Shown here: positions 12,464 through 64,000 of the stretch, one piece after another
How the letters are laid out: every line of letters starts with the position of its first letter
Numbering within the stretch: position 1 is the first letter of the stretch
NCBI RefSeq assembly: GCF_000737315.1
Contig: NZ_JMCB01000014.1
Coordinates: forward strand, 1-64,000
Direction: 5' to 3'
DNA length: 64,000 nucleotides
Source of the DNA: Hyalangium minutum
GTDB lineage: Bacteria; Myxococcota; Myxococcia; Myxococcales; Myxococcaceae
The notes under the pieces: model-generated
Told to the model about the DNA's origin: nothing
What the model saw: the letters and a program-made list of their open reading frames with translations, nothing else
Database searches by the model: none
Made by a program: the position numbers and the translations under genes

Positions 12464-12501
12464 TCCGCGAACAAAACGGCGCGGTATCCGTTAAGAGGGA
12501 G

Positions 12502-14827: not shown

Positions 14828-14836
14828 GGTGGGCTG

Positions 14837-15801: not shown

Positions 15802-16340
15802 CAGACCTCCACCAGCCCGCCCAGCAAGGCCCGGAGCCTCTCGTAACCCCGGTGGGCCCGGAGCCGCGCCGCGCCCACGCTGCCGCCCTGAAGCGCGGCG
15901 ATCTCATCGAACGACCAGCCCTCCACCTTGCTGAGGATGACCGCCTCCCGCTGATCCGTAGGCAGTTGCTGCAGTGCCTCCTCCAGCTGCTTGCGCAGGC
16001 CGGGATCTCCCACGTCCGGCGCCACCGCTCCCGCATCGAACGGGCGCTCCTTCGAGAACGCCTCGGCGTGCCGGTGGTGCCGCAACGAGTCCCGCGCCGC
16101 GTTCGCCGCGATCGTCAGCAGCCAAGGCGCGAACCGCATCCCCGGCTCGTAGCGGCCCCGTGCCCGAATCACCGACAGGAAGGTCGTCTGCAGCAGGTCC
16201 TCGGCCAGCGGGCCATCTCGCACCATGCGCGCCAGGAACCCTCGGACCCGCCCGGCATGCCGGGCGAAGAGGGCCTCGAACGCGTCATGTTCACCGTGGC
16301 AGAACCGTTCCATGAGCTCTTCGTCCGTAGGGCTCCCCAT
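15801..16340 (-). CDS. carQ: ECF sigma factor CarQ
   Basis: DEELMERF..AFEALFARH, EDLLQTTFL, WLLTIAANAARD, GWSFDEIA, AARLRAHRG. Start could instead be the ATG at 16313. Confidence 0.9.
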   Translation of the reverse strand: MGSPTDEELMERFCHGEHDAFEALFARHAGRVRGFLARMVRDGPLAEDLLQTTFLSVIRARGRYEPGMRFAPWLLTIAANAARDSLRHHRHAEAFSKERPFDAGAVAPDVGDPGLRKQLEEALQQLPTDQREAVILSKVEGWSFDEIAALQGGSVGAARLRAHRGYERLRALLGGLVEV

Positions 16341-16353
16341 CCTCTGCCTCACG

Positions 16354-16378
16354 TACGATTGAACCCGGAAAGTGTTTC
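16354..16378 (-). promoter_or_regulatory. CarQ-dependent (ECF) autoregulatory promoter
   Basis: Minus strand GAAAC-ACTTTCCGGGTTCAAT(16 nt)-CGTA directly upstream of carQ, matching the known P_QRS -35/-10 pattern. Confidence 0.75.
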
Positions 16379-16469
16379 TCCCTCCGCGCGCTCACCTCCC
16401 ACAAAGCGCCAAGTCCTTGGAACTACTCGAAAAAGCGACACGCCGCCGGCAGGCTGTCCGCCTACCGGC

Positions 16470-17945: not shown

Positions 17946-18166
17946 CGAAGAATTGCCCCCTGTTCGGATTCTAACCGCTCTTATGGGCGGATGCTGAAGA
18001 CGTTTTCGCCCAGAGAGTAGGCGCTGTTGCGCCCGAGGGAAGCCCCGCCCCACCCTCTTCTGACCGCCGTGGCTACCGGGGGGCGCCGCTTCGATCTCCG
18101 CCGAACAGGACTCGCAGGGGATTCTTCCGGAGATCCCCACTTCCGAGCGCGTCATCCCGCGCAGCA

Positions 18167-48194: not shown

Positions 48195-48986
48195 TCAGCT
48201 GCTTGCAGAGGTGTAGTACCCGATGGAGCGGAGCCACACGCGCCGCGCGACGAAGGCAAACACGAAGGAGCCCGCCACCGCCGCCACCAGCGCCCGAAGC
48301 GGCAGCCGCCCCAGCATCGCCTCCGCGGGGAACGTCGTCATCAGCGCCAGCGGGATGATGAACGTGAAGATGAAGGCCAGCGGCCCCTTGAAGATAGACG
48401 AGGGCCATCGCGCCGCATCGAAGATGGACTGGAAGAAGTAGGTGAGGTTGTCCACCTTCACGACGACGAAGGCGGCGCTCACCGTGAGGATCCACATCGA
48501 GTAGAGCAGCACCGTGCTGGTCCCCAGCAGCACCAGCGCGGCGAAGATCCCTGGGATGGACGGCCCACGCTCTAGCAGGTGGAAGGCGTAGACGATGATG
48601 GCAATGCCCGTGAGCACGTTCGTCGCGCGCCATGGCTCGAAGCCCGTGGTGGACACCAGGAACTGCGCGTCCGCGGGCTTGAGCAGCACGAAGTCCAGCG
48701 TGCCCTTGCGGATGTGCTCCACCACCCCGTTGAGGCTCGGGGTAATGGCTCCCTCCAGCACGCCCTGCAGCAGGGTGAACCAGCCCACCACCAGCAGCGA
48801 CTCGCCGAAGCTCCAGCCTGCGATGGACGGGCGCTCCGCGTAGACGACGAAGAGCGGCGCCATGGCCGTGAACGTCCAGAAGAGGGAGATGAGGCCCTCC
48901 AGCAGAAAGTCCCCGCGATACTGCATGGACAGCAGGACCGAGGCCCTCAGCTGCACGCCCAACAGACCCGCATAGCGCCGCAGCAT
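48195..48986 (-). CDS. ABC-2 type permease (DUF990-like)
   Basis: SMQYRGDF, GTLDFVLLKP, ARWPSSIF, IGYYTSASS. Confidence 0.88.
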   Translation of the reverse strand: MLRRYAGLLGVQLRASVLLSMQYRGDFLLEGLISLFWTFTAMAPLFVVYAERPSIAGWSFGESLLVVGWFTLLQGVLEGAITPSLNGVVEHIRKGTLDFVLLKPADAQFLVSTTGFEPWRATNVLTGIAIIVYAFHLLERGPSIPGIFAALVLLGTSTVLLYSMWILTVSAAFVVVKVDNLTYFFQSIFDAARWPSSIFKGPLAFIFTFIIPLALMTTFPAEAMLGRLPLRALVAAVAGSFVFAFVARRVWLRSIGYYTSASS

Positions 48987-48991
48987 CCCCG

Positions 48992-49795
48992 CTACCCTCC
49001 GTAGGCCGCGAACCGCCGCAGCCCCCGCCGCCACAAGGTGACAGCCAACATCCCCAGCAGCAGCACCCAGATCCACTGTCGCCCGACGAGCAGCAGCGTC
49101 TCCTGCCATGTGCGGTCGCCCGTCATCACCTCCACCGGCAGGCCAATCTGGTAGCGGAAGGGCAGCCAGTCCACCACCGTGCGCATCCAGCCCGGCAGGA
49201 CATCCACCGGGAACATGTACCCGGAGAGGACGAAGAACAGCACCAGCCACACATCCATCACGTGATTGCTGCTCTCCATGAACAGGGACATCGTCCCGAT
49301 GCACACGTTGGCCAGGAAGGTGATGAGCCAGCCGCCCAGCAGCGCCACCAGCAACAGCGGCCAGCCCCACCACTCCCGGGGCACCGCCTGCTCTCCCACC
49401 ACGAGCACCGAGAACACCGCCACCGGCACCGCCACCATGATGCGCATGGGCACCGCGCCCAGGTTCTCCGCCGCGTAGCCCCACAGCGGTGACATGGGCC
49501 GCAGCAGCCGCATGGCCAGCGTGCCCTGCCGCACCTCGAAGTTGATCTGCCAGGCCGCCCAGGCCCCCGTGAGCTGGCGCACCACGAAGGTGCCCAGGAA
49601 GTAGCTCACGAAGCCTTCCTGGGTGTACGGCCCCACGGGCGCCTCGCGCGCCACCGCCGTCCACAGCGCCATCATGATGAAGGGCATGGTGGTGGACAGC
49701 ACCCAGATGAGCAGCTCGGCCCGGTAGGCCAGCGCCTCGGCGAACCCCACACGCAGCAGCGTCGGGAACGCGCGCAGCGTGTTTCGCAGGCTCAC
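48992..49795 (-). CDS. ABC-2 type permease (DUF990-like)
   Basis: GTG start overlapping the ATPase stop. ALAYRAE, GTLAMRLLRP, SGYMFP, FAAYGG. Confidence 0.88.
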   Translation of the reverse strand: MSLRNTLRAFPTLLRVGFAEALAYRAELLIWVLSTTMPFIMMALWTAVAREAPVGPYTQEGFVSYFLGTFVVRQLTGAWAAWQINFEVRQGTLAMRLLRPMSPLWGYAAENLGAVPMRIMVAVPVAVFSVLVVGEQAVPREWWGWPLLLVALLGGWLITFLANVCIGTMSLFMESSNHVMDVWLVLFFVLSGYMFPVDVLPGWMRTVVDWLPFRYQIGLPVEVMTGDRTWQETLLLVGRQWIWVLLLGMLAVTLWRRGLRRFAAYGG

Positions 49796-50799
49796 GGGCT
49801 GGCCTCCCCAGAGGCGACCGCCCTGCGGGCCTTGTTCTCGGCGAACAGCTCGCTCATGACTTCCTCGAGCGGCGCGTTCTCCACCGTCAGGTCCGTCACC
49901 GGCAGGCTCGACAGCGCGCGGCTGATGGTGGCGCTCACCGCCTCCGGAGGTACCTGCAGCACCACCGAGCCCGGCTCGTGTGACACCACGCGGCCCAGCG
50001 AAGCGAGGCTGGCGGCCTCCACCGGCTTCTCCAACCGGAACACCACCCGCTTCTCCGGCCGCACCCGCTGCACCAGCGCGTCCAGCCCGCCGTCGTACGT
50101 CAGCAGCCCCTTGTCGATGACGATGATGCGCGGGCACAGCGCCGCCACGTCATCCATGTAGTGGCTCGTGAGGATGAGCGTGGCCCCGTACCGCTCCGTA
50201 TACGCCTTGATGAAGGAGCGCATCGTCACCTGCATCGACACATCCAGGCCGATGGTGGGCTCGTCCAGGAAGAGCACCTTGGGCCGGTGGATGAGCGCCG
50301 CCGCCAGCTCGCACTTCATCCGCTCGCCGAGGGAGAGCTGCCGCGAGGGCGTCTGGATGAGATCCCCCAGCTCCAGCAGCGCCACCAGCTCGTCCAGCGT
50401 CTGCTTGAACTGCTCCCGGGGTACGTCATAGATGGCGCGGTTGAGCTCGAACGTCTCCGCCGGAGGCAGGTCCCACAGCAGCTGCTGCTTCTGCCCCATG
50501 ACGAGCATGATCTTCTTGAGGTACGCGTCCTCGCGGTGGCGCGGCACGTGGCCGTCCACTGTCACCTCTCCCTCGGAGGGGTGCAGCAGCCCGGAGAGCA
50601 CCTTGAGCGTCGTGGTCTTCCCCGCGCCGTTGGGCCCCAGGAAGCCCACCCGCTCGCCGGGGCGAATCTCGAACGAGATGCCATCCACCGCCTTGACTGC
50701 GGTGTAGTCCCGGTGGAAGAGCGACCGGAAGGCGGCCTTGAGGCCGGGCGGGCGCTTGTGGACTTTGTAGTGCTTGCGCAGACCTCGGACGGAAATCAT
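49792..50799 (-). CDS. ABC transporter ATP-binding protein
   Basis: GPNGAGKTT, LSLGERMK, LFLDEPT, TSH. Confidence 0.93.
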   Translation of the reverse strand: MISVRGLRKHYKVHKRPPGLKAAFRSLFHRDYTAVKAVDGISFEIRPGERVGFLGPNGAGKTTTLKVLSGLLHPSEGEVTVDGHVPRHREDAYLKKIMLVMGQKQQLLWDLPPAETFELNRAIYDVPREQFKQTLDELVALLELGDLIQTPSRQLSLGERMKCELAAALIHRPKVLFLDEPTIGLDVSMQVTMRSFIKAYTERYGATLILTSHYMDDVAALCPRIIVIDKGLLTYDGGLDALVQRVRPEKRVVFRLEKPVEAASLASLGRVVSHEPGSVVLQVPPEAVSATISRALSSLPVTDLTVENAPLEEVMSELFAENKARRAVASGEASP

Positions 50800-50861: not shown

Positions 50862-52028
50862 ATGGCCGACGCCTATAGCAAGGACCTCGAGCGGTGGATT
50901 CCGCGACTCATCGCCGTCTGGAGGAAGGCTCGCCGCAAGGGCGATGGCCCTGAGACGCGACTGACGCCCCAGGAGGTGAAAGAGGTGGGAGCGGGCGTGA
51001 AGCAGCTCTCGCTCGGCCTCACCCGGGAGCGGCAGCTCGCCGGCGCCAAATACATGGACGACCCGAAGCTCCTGGGCGCCTACCTCCTCTTCTACTGGCC
51101 GGTGTCCTATGCCCAGGCGCGTCAGGCGCTCGGGGAGCTGCCGAACCGTCCCCGGCACGTGCTGGACCTGGGAAGTGGTCCAGGCCCGCTGGCCTTCGCC
51201 GCGCTGGATGCTGGAGCCCAGGAGGTGACCGCGGCCGACCGGAGCAAGCCCGCGCTGACGCTCGCCCGGGAACTTGCCACGGAGGCTGGCGAGGCGCTGG
51301 CCACCCGCGAGTGGGATCCAACGCGCAAGGCCCCTCTTCCCGAGGGCCAGTTCGATCTCATCACCATGGGCCACGTCCTCAATGAGCTGTACGGAACGGG
51401 GGACGGGGCCATCGGCCCTCGGGCCGCGCTGCTGGAGCAGGTGCTGGCGCAAGTGAAGAAGGGCGGGAGCCTGCTGGTGCTGGAACCAGCCTTGAAGGAG
51501 ACCTCGCGCGCCCTGCTCAAGGTGCGGGATGTGCTGGTGGGCAAGGGCTACGCGGTACGGGCGCCGTGCATGTTCCGAGGCAACTGTCCGGCGCTCATCA
51601 AGGAGAGCGACTGGTGCCACGCGGAGCGCTCGTGGCCCATGCCTCACGTGGTGGAGGAGCTGGCGCGGGCCGCGGGGCTGCACAAGGAGTCCCTGAAGAT
51701 GAGCTATCTGATGCTCGCGCCCAAGGGCGAGCCCTGGCCGGAGCTGCCTCAAGGCCGGCTCTTCCGCATCGTCTCCGAGCCGCTCGAGGGTAAGGGGCGC
51801 CAGCGCTACATCGGCTGTGGCCCCGAGGGCCGCGTGGGCCTGGCGATGCAGGAGAAGCACCGCACGGAGAAGAACGAGCGCTTCTTCAAGCTCTACCGTG
51901 GTGATGTCATCTCCGTGACTGAGACAGAGCCGAAGGGCGATGGGCTCGCGCTGGATGGCCGCTCCGAGCTGAAGATGGTCGCGCACGCGGGCAGGGGCAT
52001 ACCGCCTCCTTCCACCGAGAACCCATAA
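50862..52028 (+). CDS. Rsm22/METTL17-like SAM-dependent methyltransferase
   Basis: AYLLFYWP, VLDLGSGPG, HVLNEL, LVLEPA, APC..GNCP..DWCH. Confidence 0.8.
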   Translation: MADAYSKDLERWIPRLIAVWRKARRKGDGPETRLTPQEVKEVGAGVKQLSLGLTRERQLAGAKYMDDPKLLGAYLLFYWPVSYAQARQALGELPNRPRHVLDLGSGPGPLAFAALDAGAQEVTAADRSKPALTLARELATEAGEALATREWDPTRKAPLPEGQFDLITMGHVLNELYGTGDGAIGPRAALLEQVLAQVKKGGSLLVLEPALKETSRALLKVRDVLVGKGYAVRAPCMFRGNCPALIKESDWCHAERSWPMPHVVEELARAAGLHKESLKMSYLMLAPKGEPWPELPQGRLFRIVSEPLEGKGRQRYIGCGPEGRVGLAMQEKHRTEKNERFFKLYRGDVISVTETEPKGDGLALDGRSELKMVAHAGRGIPPPSTENP

Positions 52029-52059
52029 CCTCCCCTACCCTGTAGGGCGATGGGTCAGA

Positions 52060-52088
52060 TTGACAGGATGCTCACGTCCCTGCATCTT
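52060..52088 (+). promoter_or_regulatory. Sigma70-type promoter for the thr leader (predicted TSS at the ATG)
   Basis: TTGACA (52060-65), 17 nt, CATCTT (52083-88), 7 nt, ATG at 52096. Confidence 0.55.
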
Positions 52089-52095
52089 GTCCGCC

Positions 52096-52170
52096 ATGAA
52101 GTTCGTCCAGCTCACCACCACCACGACCACCACCACCCGCACTGGCGGGCCGGCGGTCGTGCGCACGTGA
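52096..52170 (+). CDS. Thr-rich leader peptide MKFVQLTTTTTTTTRTGGPAVVRT
   Basis: 8 consecutive Thr codons (10 of 24), 113 nt upstream of thrS, followed by alternative hairpins. Confidence 0.85.
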   Translation: MKFVQLTTTTTTTTRTGGPAVVRT

Positions 52171-52283
52171 GCTGAGCGCGCGGACACCGCAGCCCCGCCG
52201 GAACCACCGGACGGGGCGCACCGCACACTGCTTCAGCACCCCGCTCCGGTCCGGCTTTCCACCCACCGACACGGAGAACGCAC

Positions 52284-53477
52284 ATGCTGAGCGAACACGA
52301 TCATCGATCCCTGGGCGACCGCCTGGACCTCTTCCACCTGCAGGAGGAGGCCCCGGGCATGGTCTTCTGGCACCCCCGAGGGTTCATCCTGTACCAGCTC
52401 CTCGAGGAGCGCGTCCGCCGCGAGCTGGCCGCGGGCGGCTACCGCGAGGTGAGAACGCCTCAGATTCTCGGCCAGCGCATCTGGGAGAGCAGCGGCCACT
52501 GGCAGAACTTCCGCGAGGGCATGTTCGTGCTGGACGACGGCGAGCGGCCTTTTGCCATCAAACCGGTGAGCTGCCCGGGCCACATCCAGATCTTCCAGCG
52601 CATGGCCGCGTCCTTCCGCGCCCTGCCCCTGCGGCTGGCGGAGTTCGGGCTGGTGCACCGCAACGAGTCCTCCGGCGCGTTGCAGGGGCTGTTCCGCCTG
52701 CGGCAGTTCACGCAGGACGACGGCCACATCTTCTGCATGGAGGAGCAGGTGGCCGACGAGGTGGCCGCGTTCTGCCGCTCGCTGCGCGTCTTCTACCGGG
52801 ACTTTGGCTTCGAGGAAGTCCAGGTCGCCTTCAGCAGCCGCCCCGAGCAACGCGCGGGCAGCGATGAAGTCTGGGATCGCGCGGAGGCGGCGCTGCTGGA
52901 GGCCGCGGGGCGCGTCGGGCTCGACTGCCGGATGCAACCGGGCCAGGGGGCGTTCTACGGGCCGAAGCTGGAGTTCATCCTGAAGGACCGCTCGGGCCGC
53001 GAGTGGCAGTGCGGGACGATCCAGCTCGACTTCGTGCTGCCCGAGCGCTTCGACCTGCACTACGTGGACTCGGGCGGCGGGAAGCGGAGGCCGGCCATGC
53101 TGCACCGGGCGATCTTCGGCAGCGTGGAGCGCTTCCTGGGCATCCTGCTCGAGCACCACCAGGGCGCCCTGCCCGCGTGGCTCGCGCCGGAGCAGCTGCG
53201 CGTGCTGCCCGTGGGACCGGACTCGGAGGCCTACGCCTCGGCGGTCCGGAGGCGGCTGGAGGCGGCGGGGCTCCGGGTCAGCGAGGACGCGCGGGGCGAA
53301 ACGCTGTCGCGGCGGATCCTGGACTCCCACCGTGACAGCGTGCCGTTCGTCGTTCTGGTGGGGGCTCGGGAGCAGGCGGCGCTCTCGGTCCAGCTGCGAG
53401 AGCGAAGTGGAGCACAGCGGCAGGTGCCGCTGGAGGCCGCGGTTGCTGAGCTCCGGGAGGCGTGCCGGACGCCATAA
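52284..53477 (+). CDS. thrS: Threonyl-tRNA synthetase, short form (catalytic + anticodon domains only)
   Basis: Starts DHRSLG..LDLF. KPVSCPGH, VHRNE.SG, FYGPKLE, WQCGTIQLD, MLHRAIFGSVERF, WLAPEQ. Confidence 0.93.
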   Translation: MLSEHDHRSLGDRLDLFHLQEEAPGMVFWHPRGFILYQLLEERVRRELAAGGYREVRTPQILGQRIWESSGHWQNFREGMFVLDDGERPFAIKPVSCPGHIQIFQRMAASFRALPLRLAEFGLVHRNESSGALQGLFRLRQFTQDDGHIFCMEEQVADEVAAFCRSLRVFYRDFGFEEVQVAFSSRPEQRAGSDEVWDRAEAALLEAAGRVGLDCRMQPGQGAFYGPKLEFILKDRSGREWQCGTIQLDFVLPERFDLHYVDSGGGKRRPAMLHRAIFGSVERFLGILLEHHQGALPAWLAPEQLRVLPVGPDSEAYASAVRRRLEAAGLRVSEDARGETLSRRILDSHRDSVPFVVLVGAREQAALSVQLRERSGAQRQVPLEAAVAELREACRTP

Positions 53478-53487
53478 GCCTCATCCG

Positions 53488-53508
53488 GGGGGGCCTCTCA
53501 GGCCCCCT
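53488..53508 (+). terminator. Hairpin after thrS
   Basis: GGGGGCCT-CTC-AGGCCCCC, 8-bp stem. Confidence 0.45.
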
Positions 53509-53552
53509 CTGTGCAGGCAAGCACGAGGGCTCTGCTAGTGTGGCCACCCGCC

Positions 53553-54503
53553 ATGCCCTTGCGCTCTCTCTATCCCCCCATCGAGCCCTACAGCACCGGA
53601 CGCCTCCGCGTCTCCGCGCTCCACGAGCTCTACTTCGAGGAGAGCGGCAATCCCCAGGGAAAGCCTGTCCTCTTCGTCCACGGCGGCCCCGGCGGCGGCA
53701 CGGACGAGACGCAGCGGCGCTTCTTCGACCCTGCGGCTTACCGCATCGTGCTGTTCGATCAGCGCGGCTGCGGGAAGAGCACCCCGCACGCGAGCGTGGA
53801 GGAGAACACCACCTGGCACCTCGTGGAGGACATGGAGGCGCTGCGCCGCCACCTCGGCATCAAGCGGTGGATGGTCTTCGGGGGCTCGTGGGGCAGCACG
53901 CTCTCGCTGGCCTACGCGCAGAAGCACCCGGAGCACGTCTCGGAGCTGGTGCTGCGCGGCATCTTCCTGCTGCGCGTCCAGGAGATTCAGTGGTTCTACC
54001 AGCACGGGGCCCACCTGTTCTTCCCGGACGCCTGGGAGGACTTCCTGGCCCCCATCCCTCCCGAGGAGCGCGGAGATCTCGTCCAGGCCTACCACCGACG
54101 GCTCATGAGCAGCGATGCGCAAGTCCGCCAGACCGCAGCCAAGGCCTGGGCCATCTGGGAGGCCCGCACCAGCAACCTCAGGCCCAAGGCCGAAACCATC
54201 GCGCGCTACGGTGAGGACGAGTACTCGCTCGCCTTCTCGCGCATCGAGAGCCACTACTTCGTGAACCGGGGCTTCTTCCGCGGCGACAACCAGCTCCTCG
54301 AGGACGTGCCGCGCATCCGACATATCCCCGCCGTCATCGTCCAGGGGCGCTACGACATGCCCTGCCCCATCGAGAGCGCTTGGGCCCTGCACAAGGCCTG
54401 GCCCGAGGCCGAGCTGAAGATCATCCCGGACGCGGGCCACTCGGCCTATGAGCCCGGCACCACCTCCGCGCTCGTCGAGGCTACCGACATGTTCCGCCCG
54501 TAG
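53553..54503 (+). CDS. pip: Proline iminopeptidase
   Basis: LYPPIEPY, VHGGPGGG, FDQRGCGKSTP, FGGSWGS, GRYD..CP, AGHSAYE. Confidence 0.93.
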   Translation: MPLRSLYPPIEPYSTGRLRVSALHELYFEESGNPQGKPVLFVHGGPGGGTDETQRRFFDPAAYRIVLFDQRGCGKSTPHASVEENTTWHLVEDMEALRRHLGIKRWMVFGGSWGSTLSLAYAQKHPEHVSELVLRGIFLLRVQEIQWFYQHGAHLFFPDAWEDFLAPIPPEERGDLVQAYHRRLMSSDAQVRQTAAKAWAIWEARTSNLRPKAETIARYGEDEYSLAFSRIESHYFVNRGFFRGDNQLLEDVPRIRHIPAVIVQGRYDMPCPIESAWALHKAWPEAELKIIPDAGHSAYEPGTTSALVEATDMFRP

Positions 54504-54689
54504 CGCCAGCCTCAGACCCTCATGGGCGTTCAGCCGTACATGCGTGGGAACGAATGCCGCTGCTCACACTGACGCGGCAGCGGCTGATCCCGCGACACCC
54601 GACATCTGCACTCCCCGTCACCATCCTGCCACTGAACATCAGTGCCACGGCTCGGCGCCAGCCGCGCCGGGTGAACGAAGGGGGAAGTC

Positions 54690-55001
54690 ATGAGACCACA
54701 GGACACCTATGAGCAACTCGTGCCAGATGGCATGACAGAGCTCGACTTGACGCTCGAGGCCCAGGAAGGCTCAGTCGGAGACGGGACCATCCATGCCAAC
54801 AGCTGTGGCGGCTGTGGCGGCTGTGGCGGCTGTGGCGGTTGCGGGCACTGTCGCTGCGGCGGCTGCGGGCACTGCCGCTGCGGCGGTTGCGGTGGCTGCG
54901 GTAACTGCGGCAAATGCCACGGTCTCCGCGCCGATCAGACGGGCGAGGGAGACACCAAGCCCACCGGCTTCGCCCTGCTGGTGGCCCCTGCGAAGAGCTG
55001 A
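54690..55001 (+). CDS. RiPP precursor, heterocycloanthracin/sonorensin-like Cys-Gly-rich core
   Basis: SD AAGGGGGAAG. Acidic leader (TELDLTLE), core [40 protein letters not shown] (14 Cys), 26-aa tail. Directly upstream of E1-like/YcaO/SagB genes. Confidence 0.88.
54803..54882 (+). repeat. Coding tandem repeats within the precursor core
   Basis: CTGTGGCGG x4 (54803-54838) and two 24-bp GGCGGxTGCGGGCACTGyCGCTGC units. Confidence 0.85.
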
Positions 55002-55114
55002 GCCTGGATAGAGGAAGCACACGGGGTGGGGCCTTGCTGCCTCCACCCCTGGCCTTCTCTCCACTCACTTCAGAAATGACCTTTCATCCCCCTCTTCAGA
55101 AATGGAGCTGCTCC

Positions 55115-56194
55115 ATGACACCCGAGCAGAGCGCCCTGCACTTGCGCCTGGAGCCGTACCTGACCGTGGTATCGGACGGAGACACCCATGCCCACCTCAT
55201 GGTGGGCGAGAAGGTCCTGCTGCGCTGCCGCGGCCGCCTCGTGCCCCTGCTCACCTCCCGGCTGCTGCCGAGCCTGGATGGCTCCCTCAGCGTGCAGGAG
55301 GTGTGTGAGCAACTCGACGAGGTGCTCCCCCGGAAGTCCACCCTCTCCCTGCTGGACCTGCTGCTGCGGCACCGGGTGGTGTACGAAACCTCAGCCGAGC
55401 GGCAGCTGCCGCCGCAGGCTGTCGAGGCTTTTGGCGGCCTGATCCACCTGCTCGGCCGCCTCTCCGCGGGCCCCTTCGAGCTGCTGCAATCTCTGCTGGC
55501 GTCGCGGGTGGCCGTGGTGGGGGACTCGCCGCTGGTGCGGGACATCGCTCAGGCCCTGGGGGGCTGCGCCATCGGTCAGGTGGAGCTGCTCTCGGATAGG
55601 GCCATCGCGGCCATCCCTGAGCAGCCCTTCGTGCGCGTGCGCGCCCACCCGCTCGAGGCGCTGGAGGAGGTGGTACCCGGCTGCGCCCTGGTGGTGGGTG
55701 TGCAGGATGGGGACTTCGCGGCGCTGCCCCTCCTTCGCAAGCTCAACCGGTACTGCGTCGCCGAGGGCGCAAGCTGGCTGCACGTGCGGCTCACGCTGGA
55801 GGGCAAGGCCTGGCTGGGCCCCCTGTACATGCAGGACGAGGCCTGCTTCGAATGCGTGAGGCTGCGGTTCAAGAACAACCTCGAGACCTGGCGCGAGAGC
55901 AGCCTGCACGAGCTGGGCGCCCAGCGTGGGGAGCTGCCCGTGCGGCGCCTCGGGCACCCGCCGCTCCAGGCCCAGGTGGGCACCATGGTCGCGACCCAGG
56001 TGCTGCGCATCCTCTCCCACGCCGGCCCGCCCCCCCTGGCCAGCCGAGTGCAGCTGGTGGACCTGCTCACCCTGGAGAGCCACCTGCACACCGTGCTCAA
56101 GCACCCGCTGTGCCCTGTTTGCAGCCGGGCGCAGCAAGGCCCATCGTTCCCATGGGAAGAAGAGGACCTGCAGCTCGACCGGCTGCTGGTGTGA
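55115..56194 (+). CDS. TOMM E1/ThiF-like cyclodehydratase partner (C protein) with N-terminal RRE-like region
   Basis: LLPSLDGSLS..winged-helix segment, RVAVVGD, AWLGPL, ACFEC and HPLCPVC. Confidence 0.85.
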   Translation: MTPEQSALHLRLEPYLTVVSDGDTHAHLMVGEKVLLRCRGRLVPLLTSRLLPSLDGSLSVQEVCEQLDEVLPRKSTLSLLDLLLRHRVVYETSAERQLPPQAVEAFGGLIHLLGRLSAGPFELLQSLLASRVAVVGDSPLVRDIAQALGGCAIGQVELLSDRAIAAIPEQPFVRVRAHPLEALEEVVPGCALVVGVQDGDFAALPLLRKLNRYCVAEGASWLHVRLTLEGKAWLGPLYMQDEACFECVRLRFKNNLETWRESSLHELGAQRGELPVRRLGHPPLQAQVGTMVATQVLRILSHAGPPPLASRVQLVDLLTLESHLHTVLKHPLCPVCSRAQQGPSFPWEEEDLQLDRLLV

Positions 56195-56215
56195 GGTGGA
56201 AGGAGGTGGAAGGCC

Positions 56216-57595
56216 ATGCAAGTTCCCCACGAAGGGCAGCTCCAACGGACCATCCAGTTGCGCCTCGAGGAGGAGCCGGCGCGATGGGTTCCCCTCGAGC
56301 GCCTGAAACACCTGGTCAGCCCCCTGCTGGGCATCTGCCAGAGCCTCACCCGGCTGCCGATCCGGCCCGGGGAGCCCCTGTTGCCGCAGTACGACGCGAA
56401 GTTGGCGCGGATGGGCCCGCGCGCCGCTCACCAGACGCGCGAGGGCTGCTGCGGCATCGGCTACACCGACGAGGTAGCGCAGGCCGCGGCGCTGGGCGAG
56501 GCGGCAGAGACCTGGAGCGCCGCCTGCGTGGACCTGGAGCGTGTGCGCCTCTCCACCTGGCGGGAGCTGAGCCGTGAGCACGCAGCGCTGGAGCCCGAAC
56601 GCTTTGCCCTCTACTCCGAGCGGCAGTACCAGACGCCTGGATTCCCCTACGCCCCCTTCACCCGAGACACCCCCGTGGGCTGGGTCGAGGGCTGGTCGCT
56701 CGTGCGGCGCGCGCCGGTGTGGGTACCGGCCAGCCGCGTCTACTTGCCCTACGAACACCTGCCGGGCGAGCCCAACATCGGCTTCCAGTGCTCGACAGGC
56801 CTGGCGGCCGGAGGCTCTCTCGCACAGGCCATCCTCTCGGGGCTGTGCGAGGACTTCGAGCGGGATGCCTTCATCCTCTTCTGGCTGGACGAGCTGCCCG
56901 CGCGGCGCGTGCACTTGGAGGGCTCGAGCCTGTGGCGGCGCTTCGAGACCCACTTCGCCGTGCCCGGCTACGAGTACCGCATCTACGACGTGACCAACGA
57001 CGTGGGCGTGCCCACGGCCCTCGTGCTGCTCATCTGCCCCTCGGCGCACGGCGAGTTGTACCTGGCCGGGGCCGCCTCGCGTCCCCGCTGGGACCAGGCC
57101 GTCGAGAAGGCGCTGCTGGAGGCCGTGCAAGGCCGGCCCTTCATCCTCTCTCTGCTGCAGGAGGATCCGGACTGGCAGCCCGGGCCGGACTTCTCGAACG
57201 TGGTGGACTTCGACGCCCACGGCCGGCTGTACACGTCCGTCCGGGAACTCACACCCGTGCTCCTGGGAATCGAGGATCGGGTGACGGCCCACGTGCCGCT
57301 CGCGTCGCTTCCGCGGCTGGGAGGCGATGACCTGCCTGGGGACATCGCGTGGCTCGTGGGGCGCCTGGCCGAGCGGGGCTACGAGGCGGTGGTGGTGGAC
57401 CTGACCACGCCCGATGTGGCATCGCTGGGGCTGCGCGTCGTCAAGGTGCTCACCCCAGAGCTCCAGCCGCTGCACGGGGACCACCATCACCCGCACCTGG
57501 GTGGCGAGCGCATCCGCGAGGTGCCGGTGCGGCTGGGCGTGCGCAGTCCCCACGAGCCGCCCCGCATCAACCCCTACCCACACCCCTTCGCCTGA
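56216..57595 (+). CDS. YcaO cyclodehydratase (D protein)
   Basis: AALGEAAET, STGLAAG, GLCEDFERDA, EKALLEA, Pro-rich C-terminus INPYPHPFA. Confidence 0.92.
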   Translation: MQVPHEGQLQRTIQLRLEEEPARWVPLERLKHLVSPLLGICQSLTRLPIRPGEPLLPQYDAKLARMGPRAAHQTREGCCGIGYTDEVAQAAALGEAAETWSAACVDLERVRLSTWRELSREHAALEPERFALYSERQYQTPGFPYAPFTRDTPVGWVEGWSLVRRAPVWVPASRVYLPYEHLPGEPNIGFQCSTGLAAGGSLAQAILSGLCEDFERDAFILFWLDELPARRVHLEGSSLWRRFETHFAVPGYEYRIYDVTNDVGVPTALVLLICPSAHGELYLAGAASRPRWDQAVEKALLEAVQGRPFILSLLQEDPDWQPGPDFSNVVDFDAHGRLYTSVRELTPVLLGIEDRVTAHVPLASLPRLGGDDLPGDIAWLVGRLAERGYEAVVVDLTTPDVASLGLRVVKVLTPELQPLHGDHHHPHLGGERIREVPVRLGVRSPHEPPRINPYPHPFA

Positions 57596-57603
57596 GGCGT
57601 GCC

Positions 57604-58446
57604 ATGGACGACACCCTGGGAAGCATCCGCTGGAAGCTGCAGGAGCCGCCCTCGCCGGAGGAGGTGCCGCTCAGCCGGCTCTACCACGAGGGCTCCAAGT
57701 TCACGCAGGCGCGGCAGGAGGAGATCCAGTCACGCTACGAGCGGATGCAGGCCGAGCACCTGACCGACGACATGCTCGATGCCTACAAGTCCTACCCGGG
57801 GCTGCCGCAGGTGCCGCTGCCGCGCGCGCGGCTGGTCCCCCAGCGGGAACTTCAGGAGGTGGTGGCCCACCGCCGCTCGGTGCGCGCCTTCGACCCGGAG
57901 CGTCCGGTGACGCTGCAAGAGCTGGCCAACATGCTGCAGCTCACCTATGGCATCACGCAGCGGGTGGAGCTGAGCGATGGGCACGTGCAGTGCCTGCGCG
58001 CGATCCCCAGCGCTGGAGCGCTCTACCCGCTGGAGCTGTACCTGATGGCCCAGCGGGTGGAAGGGCTGCCCCCCGGCCTCTACCACTACCGGGTGGCCCA
58101 CCACGCGCTCGAGGCGCTCGAGCAGGAAGACCAGACCGCGCACCTGCAGCACGCCGAGGCGCAGTGGGGCTTCGCCACGGGAGCGGCCTTCTACCTCATC
58201 ATCAGCGCCGTGCTCGATCGCACCCTCACCAAGTACCTCGAGCGCGGCTACCGCTTCGTGCTGATGGAGGCGGGAATGGTGGGCTACAGCGCCACCCTGC
58301 TCGCCGAGTGCCAGGGGATTTGCTCGTGCATGATGGGGGGCTGGCTGGATGGGGAGCTCGAGCGTCGGCTGGGGCTGGACGGCTACCACGAGTCGGTGGT
58401 GCACTCGGTGTGCTTCGGCCGCCCTCCCCTCCCCCCAGGCGCCTGA
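57604..58446 (+). CDS. SagB/ThcOx FMN-dependent azoline dehydrogenase (B protein)
   Basis: RRSVRAF, RAIPSAGALYPLELY, YHY, TKYLERGYRF (Lys-Tyr motif), EAG. Confidence 0.92.
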   Translation: MDDTLGSIRWKLQEPPSPEEVPLSRLYHEGSKFTQARQEEIQSRYERMQAEHLTDDMLDAYKSYPGLPQVPLPRARLVPQRELQEVVAHRRSVRAFDPERPVTLQELANMLQLTYGITQRVELSDGHVQCLRAIPSAGALYPLELYLMAQRVEGLPPGLYHYRVAHHALEALEQEDQTAHLQHAEAQWGFATGAAFYLIISAVLDRTLTKYLERGYRFVLMEAGMVGYSATLLAECQGICSCMMGGWLDGELERRLGLDGYHESVVHSVCFGRPPLPPGA

Positions 58447-58463: not shown

Positions 58464-60872
58464 TCAAGGCCTGGAAGAGGTTGCTGGCTGCAAGCTCTCC
58501 GCGGGAATGACCTGCTTGCGCTGGCTCGGGCTCGACCACAGCAGCCGCGCCGTGGCCGTGCCCTTGTTCTCGTAGTACTCCATCCGCAGGCTGTAGATGC
58601 GCCCCGCTTGGAGCGCGATGGTGCCGCTGTCCTCAGCAACCGTGTGAGTCGTCCAGTTGTCGATCAGCAACTTCCCGTCCACCCAGAGCCGGACGCCGTC
58701 ATTGGTCACGGTGAAGAAGGTATAGGTCTCCGAGAACTTCGGCACGACGCTCCCACTCCACCTGACCGAGAACAGATCCGGGGCCAGGGAGGCGTCTGGA
58801 GGCACGATTCCCCACCGGAAGTCCACCGTGGGATCTACCCGCTGGAGGCGCGGCCGGGTGAGGTCTGGTGCCTCGAAGTACTCCGCGAGCAGCCCCGTTC
58901 CACTGGAGGAGGTCTCGCTACGGAACGACGCACGGTAGAGCGTGTCCGCAGCGGGCGTCCGCACGTCGTGCGTCTCCGCGCCACCATCTGACCAGTGATC
59001 GAAGACGTATCTCACTCCGTTCACCGTTTGGGGAGACACCACCCCGAGCGTTCGCATGACGCCCACCACCCCTGTCACTTCGCCCGGCGTGCCCTGCGGC
59101 TGTCCATCCAGCGTCAGCTGCAGCCCGGCCGGCTCGGTCGCGAACGCCAGCTTCACCTTGCGCGGGAGAATGTCCCGGAACACCTCGTGGGTGCTCCCCT
59201 GGGAGTCCTTCACCGTGAGGTGGATGCGGTACCACACATTCGAGGACGTCTCCCCCACCTCCGGCGGCATGAACGTGCCTCCTGTCTGTCCGCTGGTGGG
59301 AGGCATGAGGGGGTGCTGGTGCTCGTCGTGGTGGAAATCCACGCGCCAGGTGAAGGCGCTCGCCGGCAGCGTCCCGTCCTCGGCATCCGTGCCGCGCCCG
59401 CTGAAGGTGACGGCCTGTCCGGCGGTGAAGATTGCGCCTTCCGGCGGAGAGAGCACGGTGGCCACGGGCGGTGCGTCTTGCGACACGGTGAGCACTGCTT
59501 CGGCGCTCAGCACCGAGCCCGAGCTGTTGGACACGCGCACCCGGAAGCGCGCGCCAGAGTCTCCGAGCACTGCCCTCTCGAGGGCGAGGCTCGAGCTGGT
59601 CTTGCCTGGCAGATCTTTCCCGTCGCGCTGCCACTGGTAGCTCAGCGGCGGGGTTCCGGTGGCGCCCACCGTGAACGTGACGGGCTGGCCTACCGCCACG
59701 CGCTGGCTCGCCGGCGGGGTGGGAATGGTGGGAGGCTGTCCCGGCGCCACGAAGCGGATGCGATGGATGGCTCCTGCCCCCCGGTCCAGGTAGTAGAGGG
59801 CGCCGTCCGGGCCGACGTCCAGATCCACAGGCGCATCGGCCCCCTCGGTGAAGAGCTCGACCGTCCGAGTCTGAGGGTTGAACATGCGGATCCACCCCTC
59901 GCAGTAGTCCGCGAAGAAGTATTTCCCCACGTACTCCGCGGGGAACTGGGGCTGGGATGGGTTGTAGAAGGTGCCGCCAGCGATCGCGCAGCCGCGCACC
60001 TCCCCTGCGTTGTGCTGGTAGGCGTAGAGCGGCGCCGAGAAGCCCGTCTCGCTCGTGGGCCCTTCTGTGTCCGGCCACCCATAGTTCCTGCCAGCCTGGC
60101 CTTCGTTGAGCTCCTCCCACTTGCTCTGCCCCACATCGTTGATGAAGAGGCGCCCGGTTCCTGGCTGCACGGCAAAGCTGAAAGGGTTCCGCAGCCCGAG
60201 TGCCCAGATGGAGCGCCGGTTCCCCTCGGCTCGGGTGAAGAAGGGGTTGTCCGAGGGAATCCCTCCATTCTTGTCGAACCGCAGCACCTTGCCGTACAGG
60301 TTGGTCAGCGCCTGCGCGTTCGATGAGCGTGCGTTGTCTCCCACGCTCACGTAGAGCATGCCATCGGTGCCGAAGTGGACGGCACCGCCGTTGTGGTTGG
60401 TGGCGGAGCCCAGCGGCTCCAGGTCCAGCAGCACCCGCTCGCTGCCCTCCTCCGCGCGGTTCCCGTTCGCGGTGAAGCGGCTCAGGCGGTTGTGCTCACT
60501 GGGCGAGGTGGCCGTGTAATAGACGTAGACATAGGGCTCGTCAGGGAACTCCGGATCCAGCGCCACACCCAGGAGTCCGCGCTCGCCATCCGGATCGACG
60601 TTCAGCTTGAGGAAGGGCTCGGGAAGCAGCTTTCCGTCCTGGATGATCCGCAGGCGCCCCCCCTGCTCACAGACGAAGATGCGCCCATCGGGGGCGAAAG
60701 TCATGGAGACGGGATCCGCGAGCCCGACGACGAGCCGCGAGTCCTCGAAGCGAGGCGGGAGCATGACTTGCTGCTGACTCTGCAGGAAGGACCGAGAGGG
60801 CCGCTCCTCCGTGCATCCCCCAAGAGACAAGAAGAGGCAGACCTGGAGCAACAGAATGATGGTGGTGCGCAT
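58464..60872 (-). CDS. Lipoprotein: glucose/sorbosone (PQQ-dependent) dehydrogenase propeller + Ig + PA14 domain
   Basis: Lipobox LGGC. GERGLLG, NHNGG.VHFGTDG.LY, GLRNPFS, SYQWQRDG, FSVRWSG, NDGVRLWVDG. Confidence 0.88.
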   Translation of the reverse strand: MRTTIILLLQVCLFLSLGGCTEERPSRSFLQSQQQVMLPPRFEDSRLVVGLADPVSMTFAPDGRIFVCEQGGRLRIIQDGKLLPEPFLKLNVDPDGERGLLGVALDPEFPDEPYVYVYYTATSPSEHNRLSRFTANGNRAEEGSERVLLDLEPLGSATNHNGGAVHFGTDGMLYVSVGDNARSSNAQALTNLYGKVLRFDKNGGIPSDNPFFTRAEGNRRSIWALGLRNPFSFAVQPGTGRLFINDVGQSKWEELNEGQAGRNYGWPDTEGPTSETGFSAPLYAYQHNAGEVRGCAIAGGTFYNPSQPQFPAEYVGKYFFADYCEGWIRMFNPQTRTVELFTEGADAPVDLDVGPDGALYYLDRGAGAIHRIRFVAPGQPPTIPTPPASQRVAVGQPVTFTVGATGTPPLSYQWQRDGKDLPGKTSSSLALERAVLGDSGARFRVRVSNSSGSVLSAEAVLTVSQDAPPVATVLSPPEGAIFTAGQAVTFSGRGTDAEDGTLPASAFTWRVDFHHDEHQHPLMPPTSGQTGGTFMPPEVGETSSNVWYRIHLTVKDSQGSTHEVFRDILPRKVKLAFATEPAGLQLTLDGQPQGTPGEVTGVVGVMRTLGVVSPQTVNGVRYVFDHWSDGGAETHDVRTPAADTLYRASFRSETSSSGTGLLAEYFEAPDLTRPRLQRVDPTVDFRWGIVPPDASLAPDLFSVRWSGSVVPKFSETYTFFTVTNDGVRLWVDGKLLIDNWTTHTVAEDSGTIALQAGRIYSLRMEYYENKGTATARLLWSSPSQRKQVIPAESLQPATSSRP

Positions 60873-61040: not shown

Positions 61041-64000
61041 TCACTTCGGTGTGCTCGTGTCCCCGGCATCGAGGATGACGAACTCGACGCGGCGGTTGTT
61101 CTCGCGGCCCGCGTCCGTCAAGGTGGTGTCCACCGGGCGCGTCTCGCCAAAGCCCTCGGAGATGAGGCGATTCGTATCGATGCCCGCCTCCTTCACGAGG
61201 TACTTGAGCACGTTGCCCGCGCGCCGCCGGGACAGGTCCATATTGAAGGCGTCGTCGGCCCTGTCGTCGGTGTGGCCCTCGATGCGAACCTTCTTGAGCT
61301 GTGGGTTGGCCTTGAGCACCAGGGCCACCTGCTGCAGCAGCGGAAACGAGCGCTCCAGCACCACGTCCTTATTGGTGGCGAAGTAGACCTTCTCCTTGAT
61401 GACGAGCTTCTGGGGGGTCACCTGGACCTGGCTCTCGCCCTCGTCCGGGCAGCCGTCCGTGTCCTCCACGCCGTTGATGGTCTCCTTCTCGGTGGGGCAC
61501 AGGTCGCCCGCATCGGCCACGCCATCGCTGTCGTTGTCGGGGTCGGGGCAGCCGTCTTCGTCCTGGAAGCCGTCCTTGTCCTCGGGCTCGGAGGGGCACG
61601 CGTCGCTGCCATCGGCCAGGCTATCGGAGTCCGAGTCCTTCGCGACGAGGCGGGGCGGCTGCTCCACGGTGTACGCGAAGCCGGAGAACACACGGAACAC
61701 GGGCATGCCGTAGCCCAGCGTGAGCCCCTTGCCCACGCCCAACGTGGCCACGATGCCCTTGCTCACGCGCGTCTGAAGCCCCGCCTGCAGCTCGAGCGGC
61801 CGCTCCTCCTCATTGGCTCCGCCGGTGGCGCCCAGCCCCAGGGCGCCGCCCAGCGAGGCGAGACCGGTGAACGGGTGCTCCTTCACCTCGAAGGGGATGG
61901 CGGCGCCCACGCCATAGCTCAGCTCATGGCCCACCGAGAGGTTGGCCAGCTCCTGGCGGCTGCGCACGTTGAGGCCCACGTTGGCCAGCAGCCGGGGGCC
62001 ACCCTTGAAGGCGTAGTCCACCGCGAGCCGCGGCTGCATCCCGAACCCCTTCTGGCCCTGCAGCTCCGAGGCGCCGCCCGTGGGCAACACCACCGGCACC
62101 GCGAGCCCCAGCCGAAGGGTGTCTCGCTCTAGAAGCAGCACCTTGGGGACGAGCCGGAGGTCTCCCAGGCCGCCCTTCCACGACTGCGCCAGGTTACCGG
62201 TGGGCAGCTCGTTGAACTCGCCGTGCTGGAGCTTGAGAGGGGCCACGAGGCCCAGCTCGAAGCGTTCGCCCAGGCCGATGGCGCCCATCAGGTCGAAGCC
62301 GAACTGGTTGCGCACCAGGTGCTGCAGCAGCGCGGAGTTGTCCGGGTTGATGACGACCAGCGGCTCGTGGGCGTAGTTGAGGTAGAGCCCGGCGCGCCAG
62401 TTCCTGTCGCCCTGCACTCCCGGACTGTGCAGGCCGAGCACGTCGGCCTTGCCCGGAGCGGGCCGGAACTGCTGGACGTCGATGGCGGCCGAGGTGCCCT
62501 GAGCCCATGAGGCGCCGGAGGCGGTCAGCGCCCCCACGGCTCCGAGCACCACCAGAGACCGGAGGCGCCGCGAGCGGACCACGGCACGCCCCGGGCGGCT
62601 CCGGCACGACAGGAACACCAGGGCTAGCACCATCCCCGCTCCGCCCATCAGACCGCTGTTGCCCGAGCTGCTGCAGCCATTGCCGACCACGCGGTGAGTC
62701 CCACCAATGGGCCCCTCCTGTGTGACGATCGTGTCGATGTCCGTGGCGGTGTTGTTCGCGAGGTTGGAGTTCTGCTGCTGCGGGCCCGACTCCGAGACCG
62801 TGGCGGTCACGTCCACCGTGCCCGTGGCGGAGGGGCTCACGTCCACGACGAAGGTGAAGGTGACGGTGCCTCCCACGGGGACGGTGACGTTCGTCGCGAT
62901 GCCTCCCGTGCCACTGGCATCCTGGCAGGTGGCGCCCGCCTCGCCCGAGCACGTCCACGTGGCGCCGGTGGCGTTCACGGGCAGCTGGACGGAGACAAGC
63001 GCGTCCGTCACGGTGTCGAGGCCCATGTTGGTGACAGTCACCGTATAGGTGACGGTGGCTCCCGGCACGGTGGAGGTCTGCCCATCGGTGATGGCGATCG
63101 CCAAGTCGAGCGAGGCGCACGCCAGCCACGGCTGGCTCAGGTTGGGCACGGTGACGAGCTGGCCGTCGGCGCCATAGGTGGCGCCGTTGGAAGGGAACTC
63201 GGCCAGCGACAGCGAGGAGGTGGTTCCCGACAGTCCTCCGTTGACGAAGGTCAGCGGAGTGCCGCCGCTCACCGCGATGAAGCCGCCACCACCTCCGCCG
63301 CCCGGGCCCTCGGCCTCGGCGGTGGTGATGACCTGGGAGCCGCCCTGGCCACCGAGAGCCTGCACGGTGATGTCCGAGAGGCTGTTGCTGAGGATCACGA
63401 CGGTGCCGCCACCGCCACCGCCGCCCGGCGCATCGTTGTGCGTGGCCAGGGTGTTCAGCGCGCTGTCGCCGTTGGCCTGGATTTCTCCGCTGCCCGCCAC
63501 GGTGGGCGAGATGAGGTAGACGAGTCCGCCCCCGTTACCGCCCGGGCTCCCCGCGCTGTCGTTCGCGTCGCCCGCACCACCGCCACCCCCGAGAAAGAGC
63601 CGGGAGGAAACGTCGTTGTCGAGCGGCCGTCCGCCCAGGCCGCCGACTTCCGCGCGCAGGTCTCCACCCCACGAGGCGTTGGTGGGGCCCACTTTGAGCG
63701 CATCCTGGTTCAACGAGGCGGCGCTGTACCCGCCTCGGCCACCACCCGAAGAGTCCGTCAGCGCATTCCCATTGGCGATGTATCCCGGGTCGAGCCGCCA
63801 CGCGGAGTCACCCACCACCGAGGCGCTCATCACCCCTTGTCCACTCCAAGGCCGGCCGTTGTTGCCGTTGGCACCTCCTCCTCCGGCCGCGTTGTGGCTG
63901 TTGCCACCGCCACCTCCGTTGGCTGGAGCTCCGCGGCCATAGCGTCCGCCCAGGGCGTCATAGACGGAGGTATCTCCGGCGATGCTCTCGCCCTTCTCAG
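61041..64000 (-). CDS. 5'-truncated large surface protein: Gly-rich (AgmC-like) region, DUF11/Ig, internal MYXO-CTERM-like motif, beta-barrel, TSP3 repeats, OmpA domain
   Basis: Frame open to the window edge. GRGAPANGGGGG, DLAIAIT..TYTVTVTNMG, DxDGxxDxxDxCP repeats, EGHTDD..LSRRRA..GFGETRP..NRRVEF. Confidence 0.88.
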   Translation of the reverse strand, partial: EKGESIAGDTSVYDALGGRYGRGAPANGGGGGNSHNAAGGGGANGNNGRPWSGQGVMSASVVGDSAWRLDPGYIANGNALTDSSGGGRGGYSAASLNQDALKVGPTNASWGGDLRAEVGGLGGRPLDNDVSSRLFLGGGGGAGDANDSAGSPGGNGGGLVYLISPTVAGSGEIQANGDSALNTLATHNDAPGGGGGGGTVVILSNSLSDITVQALGGQGGSQVITTAEAEGPGGGGGGGFIAVSGGTPLTFVNGGLSGTTSSLSLAEFPSNGATYGADGQLVTVPNLSQPWLACASLDLAIAITDGQTSTVPGATVTYTVTVTNMGLDTVTDALVSVQLPVNATGATWTCSGEAGATCQDASGTGGIATNVTVPVGGTVTFTFVVDVSPSATGTVDVTATVSESGPQQQNSNLANNTATDIDTIVTQEGPIGGTHRVVGNGCSSSGNSGLMGGAGMVLALVFLSCRSRPGRAVVRSRRLRSLVVLGAVGALTASGASWAQGTSAAIDVQQFRPAPGKADVLGLHSPGVQGDRNWRAGLYLNYAHEPLVVINPDNSALLQHLVRNQFGFDLMGAIGLGERFELGLVAPLKLQHGEFNELPTGNLAQSWKGGLGDLRLVPKVLLLERDTLRLGLAVPVVLPTGGASELQGQKGFGMQPRLAVDYAFKGGPRLLANVGLNVRSRQELANLSVGHELSYGVGAAIPFEVKEHPFTGLASLGGALGLGATGGANEEERPLELQAGLQTRVSKGIVATLGVGKGLTLGYGMPVFRVFSGFAYTVEQPPRLVAKDSDSDSLADGSDACPSEPEDKDGFQDEDGCPDPDNDSDGVADAGDLCPTEKETINGVEDTDGCPDEGESQVQVTPQKLVIKEKVYFATNKDVVLERSFPLLQQVALVLKANPQLKKVRIEGHTDDRADDAFNMDLSRRRAGNVLKYLVKEAGIDTNRLISEGFGETRPVDTTLTDAGRENNRRVEFVILDAGDTSTPK

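Follow-up and report, generated by a model that had tools for sequence, protein, structure and literature searches.

The window analysed here is a stretch of 64,000 nucleotides from Hyalangium minutum DSM 14724T (assembly GCA_000737315.1, contig JMCB01000014.1; JMCB00000000; PMC5441343), a myxobacterium of the family Archangiaceae in the phylum Myxococcota. Between positions 54690 and 58446 of the plus strand it carries four genes in the order A-C-D-B which, judged from their sequences, very probably form a functional, self-contained cassette for a linear azol(in)e-containing peptide (LAP), or thiazole/oxazole-modified microcin (TOMM). Gene A (54690-55001), identified by its open reading frame (ORF), its orthologues and the purifying selection acting on it, encodes a precursor peptide of 103 amino acids. 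Gene C (55115-56194) encodes an E1-like partner protein of 359 amino acids with a RiPP recognition element (RRE), gene D (56216-57595) a YcaO cyclodehydratase of 459 amino acids and gene B (57604-58446) a SagB-type azoline dehydrogenase of 280 amino acids that depends on flavin mononucleotide (FMN). The gaps A-C, C-D and D-B measure 113, 21 and 8 bp, respectively. An earlier reading of the window made from its letters alone (hereafter the sequence-only reading) had described a tight run of precursor, E1-like/RRE protein, YcaO and SagB in a compact myxobacterial LAP/TOMM cassette with separate C and D genes and with gaps of 21 and 8 bp between the enzyme genes; all four genes lie where it placed them, both distances are exact and C and D are indeed encoded apart. 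The start of C at 54914, which gives the longest ORF (426 amino acids), was rejected as over-extended in favour of the GenBank start at 55115, where GGAG stands 7 nt before the ATG, and a long antisense ORF (55391-57583) was set aside as a typical high-GC artefact.

Protein D scores 253 bits against the YcaO model PF02624 and 287.5 bits against the SagD model TIGR03604 (cut-off 219.25). Its acidic ATP/Mg motifs (E95, E98, E212 and E215-R216-D217) are invariant across 15 relatives and align with those of TruD. The protein ends in the PxPxP motif PYPHP (amino acids 453-457), a type of C-terminus that Dunbar et al. in 2014 are said to have recognised as a mark of azoline-forming YcaO proteins. 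The AlphaFold2 model of D is confident, with a predicted local distance difference test score (pLDDT) of 80.4 and a predicted template modelling score (pTM) of 0.86. In a Foldseek search with this model the best match is LynD (template modelling (TM) score 0.70-0.72, E 6e-23), followed by MusD, archaeal thioamide YcaO proteins and TruD; McbD is matched with a TM score of 0.53 (E 1.6e-11) at 14-16% identity.

Protein B reaches 138.3 bits against TIGR03605 (cut-off 78.4) and 86 bits against PF00881, and contains the FMN motif RRSVRAF. The Lys-Tyr motif of the dehydrogenase, already pointed out in the sequence-only reading, is Lys210-Tyr211, which aligns with the KY of BmdC. The relatives of B in the PDB are 3eo7, BmdC, CyaGox and McbC.

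Protein C passes the model TIGR03882, "TOMM precursor leader peptide-binding protein", with 67.8 bits (cut-off 36.9) and falls slightly under the cut-off of PF00899 (ThiF) with 27.1 bits. Its N-terminal RRE (approximately amino acids 20-86) matches the RRE protein PbtF (8t19; E 6e-5). A profile of 25 sequences compared with the PDB aligns residues 7-340 of C with residues 7-326 of TruD (E 2e-29) and also matches MccB (E 3e-30) and, further down, LynD, MusD, PaaA, MoeB and ThiF. Because the profile covers TruD 7-326 and C matches PbtF, we regard C as equivalent to the RRE and the E1-like domain of a heterocyclase of the cyanobactin type, encoded as a separate protein. Where the nucleotide-binding loop should read GxGxxG, C has the degenerate sequence VVGDSPL, as would be expected of a non-adenylating scaffold or partner; two CxxC pairs are present (C244/C247 and C333/C336). 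An exhaustive profile search for C returned 2473 relatives; those scoring better than 1e-47 form only about 13 clusters at 50% identity, and a gap to 1e-33 follows.

The precursor encoded by gene A, which is preceded by a strong ribosome-binding site (GAAGGGGGAAG, 54677-54687), consists of a leader of amino acids 1-38 (54690-54803), a Cys-rich core of amino acids 39-76 with 14 Cys (54804-54917), a linker of seven amino acids, 77-83 (54918-54938), and a conserved C-terminal tail of 20 amino acids, 84-103 (54939-54998), which we call the follower; the stop codon occupies 54999-55001. The sequence-only reading had given the core string exactly, with its 14 Cys and 1 Ser, and had let the peptide end at ...CGKCH; this end was wrong, the linker and the follower coming after it. 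Within the core the Cys spacing is C-x-x-C in 11 and C-x-C in two cases, and the residue before Cys is Gly in 7 of 14 positions, the others being Ser, His, Arg, Asn or Lys. The DNA of the core carries tandem repeats of 9 nt (4.1 copies, 100% match) and of 24 nt (2.7 copies, 90% match).

Five orthologous precursors were found, three (P0074 to P0076) by a word-indexed search of 5.8 billion proteins and two, in the loci L083 and L087, from fetched DNA. The word-indexed search was shallow, yielding three matches with the precursor and two with C as query. All five share the three-part plan of leader, core and follower. Residues 1-23 of the 38-residue leader are nearly invariant (M..QDT.E..VP.GMTE(L/I)DLTLE), and after a short linker the followers have the consensus TGEG(DTK/EPQ)PTGF(A/D)LLVAPAK(S/G). 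The cores, in between, are 26-38 amino acids long and contain 10-14 Cys, with one or two residues of the set G, H, R, N, K, P, A and T between them; they have been rebuilt in length and sequence between lineages with enzymes still 88-93% identical. Since the core DNA carries tandem repeats, repeat slippage is a plausible source of this variation, and the reshuffling fits either such slippage or diversifying pressure.

Over the 38 core codons, the window and L087 differ by ten synonymous and no nonsynonymous changes. For the follower the ratio of synonymous to nonsynonymous changes is 6:1 between L083 and L086 and 5:0 between L086 and L082. The follower is thus translated and constrained, its codon differences being mostly synonymous, and gene A is a real gene rather than a chance ORF, because five orthologous precursors adjoin orthologous C-D-B genes and purifying selection is evident at the level of codons. 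That the follower could be a known C-terminal sorting signal was considered and rejected: it has no match in NCBIfam or Pfam, and its hydrophobic stretch comprises merely about eight residues.

The sequence-only reading had taken the cassette for a heterocycloanthracin system in split form. In Bacillus, heterocycloanthracin clusters encode a fused C-D cyclodehydratase and an "ocin-ThiF-like" F protein (PMC4603692). The Gly-rich C-x-x repeat core is indeed common to the window precursor and to heterocycloanthracin and sonorensin; the precursor gives a weak match of 26.6 bits to TIGR03601, and the orthologue P0074 is weakly flagged by PF27784, "Bacteriocin_sonorensin". The TIGR03601 cut-off is 35 bits, however, and all orthologues stay below it as well (16.3-26.4 bits), the match extending over the Cys-Gly repeat alone and not over the leader. 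Protein C fails the SagC/"ocin" model TIGR03603 (31.8 bits against a cut-off of 187.65) and has no reported match to the F protein model TIGR03693, no further ThiF-like gene was found within 46-64 kb of the window, C and D are unfused, and among solved structures the cyanobactin heterocyclases LynD, TruD and MusD come closest to them. It is therefore extremely improbable that the cassette belongs to the heterocycloanthracin/sonorensin family or derives from it by a splitting of genes, and this part of the earlier interpretation had to be abandoned.

In the orthologous cassettes the order A-C-D-B is kept and the enzymes are 88-96% identical. L087, the closest relative (enzymes 94-96% identical), and L083 have the same flanks as the window, whereas in L082 (JGI metagenome; 88-90% identity for the enzymes) and L086 (ENA) the cassette lies in wholly different flanks. 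The comparison of these loci sets the limits of the unit. On the left, homology among five loci with different flanks starts about 165 nt before the ATG of A (approximately 54526), and on the right it ends at the stop codon of B. A convergent gene ends 17 nt from this stop codon in the window, and a different gene occupies that place in L082. Judged from these boundaries the cassette is a portable four-gene unit that takes along its conserved 5' sequence and the hairpin behind gene A.

The conserved upstream region (54526-54689, plus strand), by homology among the five orthologous loci a putative promoter or 5' untranslated region, contains an inverted repeat (GCCGCTGC at 54556-54563 and GCAGCGGC at 54577-54584) that is invariant among them; the fold of 54526-54600 is marginal (z = -2.2). 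The spacer of 113 nt between A and C is 93% conserved and carries on the plus strand, directly 3' of the precursor coding sequence, a long imperfect hairpin (54999-55067) with a folding energy of -36.5 kcal/mol (z = -3.5; none of 200 shuffled sequences was as stable) and without a U-tract. Four orthologues retain its consensus fold, with one compensatory pair, the sequences being too alike for covariation; the hairpin is thus supported by how conserved and how stable it is, not by covariation. Hairpins are frequent behind the precursor genes of operons for peptides that ribosomes synthesise and that are modified after translation (RiPPs), and by analogy the one after gene A may set the ratio of precursor to enzyme transcripts. 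A scan of 51800-55200 with Rfam gave a spurious match to isrG alone (16.7 versus 100 bits).

Several observations weigh against a functional LAP/TOMM cassette. The non-Gly residues (His, Arg, Asn, Lys) before 6 of the 14 core Cys make full cyclisation uncertain; with Gly before 7 of the 14, full modification is not assured. The AlphaFold2 model of C, computed from an alignment of three sequences, is of low confidence (pLDDT 45.8) and unusable for a fold search. Upstream of the cassette no promoter-like site of the sigma-70 type was detected. The cassette contains no gene for a protease, an exporter or immunity, a lack that would be unusual if the product were a potent, self-toxic antibiotic. 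The ABC transporter closest by (48195-50799, minus strand) is not conserved together with the cassette, and it is only 36% identical to the cluster-linked transporter of the sister clusters described below.

The lack of a detectable promoter and of accessory genes, together with the fragmented C, D and B genes of L086, would also suit a silent or decaying remnant, or a small ORF that is not a substrate at all. On the other side, none of the four ORFs is broken in the window, L082, L083 or L087, the enzymes have kept their motifs at 88-96% identity, the precursor is under strong purifying selection, and a Cys-rich small ORF stands beside C-D-B in every relative examined. The fragmentation in L086 looks like an assembly artefact, probably long-read frameshifts, because many genes of that contig are affected. 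In this contig (ENA ERZ25039564 contig_31753) we observed two convergent copies of C-D-B (approximately 9001-12722, plus strand, and 14739-18062, minus strand), the YcaO proteins of which are 88% and 81% identical to that of the window; the precursor of the second copy falls outside the locus that was fetched. With intact genes and purifying selection, a silent or decaying cluster is very unlikely, and a working four-gene cassette is by far the better account.

The genes around the cassette were considered separately. Directly upstream and on the same strand lies the gene of a prolyl aminopeptidase (53511-54503; TIGR01249, 468 bits), which is present in the window and L083, probably also in L087, and absent in L082 and L086. 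It encodes the only peptidase nearby and is probably a mere neighbour. Further upstream, a truncated paralogue of threonyl-tRNA synthetase (ThrRS; 52284-53477, plus strand; 397 amino acids) covers only positions 169-563 of the thrS model and is without the N-terminal TGS and editing domains. A small ORF 113 nt before it (52096-52170, plus strand; MKFVQLTTTTTTTTRTGGPAVVRT) contains eight consecutive Thr codons, and the leader region of the ThrRS gene folds strongly (dG -88.7, z -4.1) with no match in Rfam; ORF and leader together look like an attenuator controlling the editing-less ThrRS copy. Extra ThrRS copies are self-resistance genes in the producers of borrelidin and obafluorin, which is a lead only; the Thr-codon ORF and the ThrRS gene are not conserved beside the cassette in L082 or L083. 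Downstream, separated by 17 nt from the gene of SagB and convergent with it, is the gene of a protein of 802 amino acids with a GSDH beta-propeller, Ig and PA14 domains (58464-60872, minus strand), followed by that of an OmpA-domain protein with DUF11/CLIPPER repeats (61041-63833, minus strand); both proteins are of a large secreted or surface type. The truncated ThrRS, the prolyl aminopeptidase, the GSDH-PA14 protein and the ABC-2 transporter were all rejected as members of the cassette because they are not conserved with it in L082 and L086.

The class to which the cassette would belong on the evidence of its genes is the LAP/TOMM class, reportedly defined by Arnison in 2013: precursor, RRE partner, azoline-type YcaO and SagB with Lys-Tyr motif are all found in the window, the enzymes at the level of family models. 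The minimal LAP cluster as defined by Travin et al. (2020; PMC7136475) is exactly this gene set, and the cluster itself is already listed in their Table S2 (YcaO WP_044194227.1, NZ_JMCB01000014.1, H. minutum DSM 14724) with the exact predicted precursor of 103 amino acids. Their text is without a discussion of the H. minutum cluster, and the follower, the hypervariability of the core and the boundaries of the cassette are not described there. In the open literature we found no characterised myxobacterial LAP, in agreement with the sequence-only reading, and no later open-access mention of the "anabaenasins" introduced below. The enzymology of C, D and B is entirely standard, and the cluster is canonical and part of published genome mining.

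Among the known groups, the "anabaenasin" group, catalogued as uncharacterised by Cox, Doroghazi & Mitchell (2015; PMC4603692) and drawn from a D-protein network at BLAST 1e-54, has separate C and D proteins, a "unique" C protein and Gly/Cys-rich precursors, and includes Sorangium. The H. minutum cassette is like it in architecture and precursor composition. The precursors of Sorangium cellulosum So ce56 and So0157-2 contain CGGC/CRC repeats, and the core of So ce56 (table of PMC7136475) is very like that of the window. The precursors of the Nostoc and Anabaena members of the group also have C-terminal tails after the core (...EEDSDMGFGY and ...EDTDEIGFGY); the leaders and followers of the group and of the Sorangium precursors cannot be aligned by eye with those of the window, save for an acidic-x-GF resemblance.

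Of the proteins with solved structures, the cyanobactin heterocyclases PatD, TruD and LynD, together with MusD, are closest to both D (E ~1e-23) and C. They combine RRE, E1-like and YcaO domains in the same order as C-D in H. minutum, fused in one protein there and encoded by separate genes here. Cyanobactin pathways employ the PatA/PatG proteases and macrocyclisation, whereas there are no protease genes in or beside the cassette in five contexts. The H. minutum cassette differs further in having a stand-alone gene for SagB and a Cys-repeat core rather than a cassette of short cores. In the leader, the motif MTELDLTLE is similar to the cyanobactin recognition sequence LAELSEEAL; this is a lead only.

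Microcin B17 (McbABCD-EFG) has, like H. minutum, separate McbB, McbC and McbD proteins and a Gly-rich Cys/Ser core. McbC is a remote relative of B (E 6e-11) and McbD is distant from D by fold, phmmer found no McbD match for D at 1e-3 and the profile search of the PDB found no McbB match for C. Neither McbEFG-type export and immunity genes nor genes for a pentapeptide-repeat protein or a dedicated pump were found in the cassette. For want of the defining accessory genes it belongs neither to the microcin B17 family nor to the cyanobactins.

A search of the genome collection for related loci, built on an alignment of 15 YcaO sequences, revealed sister clusters at about 45-50% identity, with YcaO proteins at about 50%, in Archangium and Cystobacter (L001, L002, L005), Hyalangium rubrum (L084) and metagenome-assembled genomes (MAGs) of Polyangia (L003, L085). 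Protein C is present in every sister cluster (43-47% identity); in L001, L002, L005 and L084 its gene is on the divergent strand. The sister clusters also contain SagB and short Cys-rich precursors with a related leader motif, (L/F)x(L/I)E.(V/I)SE; examples of their cores are CCCCCCC, CCCCCSS and GGGGCGGGGGCGSGSSSS, the last, from Archangium and Cystobacter, being strikingly like that of microcin B17, and none has a follower. They are accompanied by a CIA30-domain protein, a GNAT protein and either an ABC transporter or an MFS pump, none of which occurs in the window cassette. We also noted that the sister precursors have poly-Cys cores (CCCCCCCVFNF, CCCCCSSNKPA) or the microcin B17-like GGGGCGGGGGCGSGSSSS, that two precursors at times stand in tandem, that the CIA30-domain protein is conserved and 420-450 amino acids long, and that the precursor with CCCCCCC reaches 23.6 bits against the model for streptolysin S, under its cut-off.

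YcaO-SagB pairs that are further removed (30-36% identity) occur in Acidobacteriota, Nitrospira and Streptosporangium; they adjoin precursors that have long leaders and end in CCCCTPCCCC. The precursor end CCCC(T/I/A)(P/A)CCCC is conserved beside distant YcaO-SagB pairs of Acidobacteriota, Actinomycetota, Chloroflexota, Bacteroidota and Alphaproteobacteria (L023, L024, L026, L035, L036, L038, L042, L051, L052, L058, L067, L068, L072 and L080, at ~5.5-5.9 kb in each). The precursors of a Polyangiaceae MAG (L074, ~5663) and a Puia sp. (L040, ~5588) have C-x-x-C cores and Gly-rich tails, ...GF.GFGG and ...RFGSLG, respectively, which resemble the ...GFGY tails of the "anabaenasins" (Cox et al., 2015) and loosely the ...PTGFALL of the window.

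From the identities of the genes we propose the following pathway. The conserved N-terminal leader of the 103-residue precursor would be bound by the RRE of the non-catalytic, E1-like protein C, which would present the Cys-x(1-2) repeat core to D. D would then use ATP to cyclodehydrate up to 14 Cys to thiazolines, and B, dependent on FMN, would oxidise the thiazolines to thiazoles with a loss of 20 Da each. The upper limit of 14 thiazoles given in the sequence-only reading is possible with the 14 Cys of the core. The product would be a cationic polythiazole peptide interspersed with Gly, His, Arg and Lys. Unlinked host factors would cut off the leader, and probably the follower too, or use them as handles, and export would likewise be carried out by unlinked proteins.

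As for the function of the peptide, the hypervariable cores in near-identical cassettes and the predatory way of life of the organism lead us to favour a molecule of competition. We put an antibacterial active in competition or predation, tentatively, at a little less than an even chance; an activity of some other kind is possible though doubtful, and a metal-binding peptide is held to be slightly more doubtful than that. In its explicit form, the metal-binding proposal says that the peptide is chiefly a metallophore or intracellular buffer in which heterocyclisation is partial, and in which thiazole or thiazoline nitrogens, His imidazoles and thiols chelate Cu, Zn or Ni. Besides Cys the cores are rich in His (2-5 residues; that of P0075 is CRCHCHTCRCHCHGCHGC), and the absence of immunity and export genes from the cassette is in its favour, since a non-toxic product would need no immunity gene; a metal-binding role may therefore stay alive. 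Yet none of the five contexts links the cassette to a gene for a metal-responsive regulator, a transporter or a receptor, full oxidation by the conserved SagB would remove the thiolate ligands, and the hypervariability of the core is unlike what a precise chelating site would predict. The chiefly metal-binding peptide is thus unlikely, and a polythiazole used in competition is the function that we prefer.

Conservation is higher in the follower than in the leader, and the sister clusters lack the follower. It could be a new second handle on a LAP precursor, either for recognition or as a tag for export or processing that leads into host machinery, and the hypervariable core, driven by its repeats, would then provide Hyalangium-like myxobacteria with strain-specific polythiazole weapons or with thiazole/His metal binders; we consider this idea speculative and rather improbable in this full form. 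The enzymology being standard and the cluster already mined, its value is that of a discovery target, not of a conceptual surprise. The clade is very small, with five orthologous precursors and about 13 clusters of C proteins at 50% identity, and the self-contained unit of four genes in 3.9 kb is an easy target for heterologous expression. It could give a cationic peptide dense in thiazoles and would reveal the role of a conserved follower in a LAP precursor.

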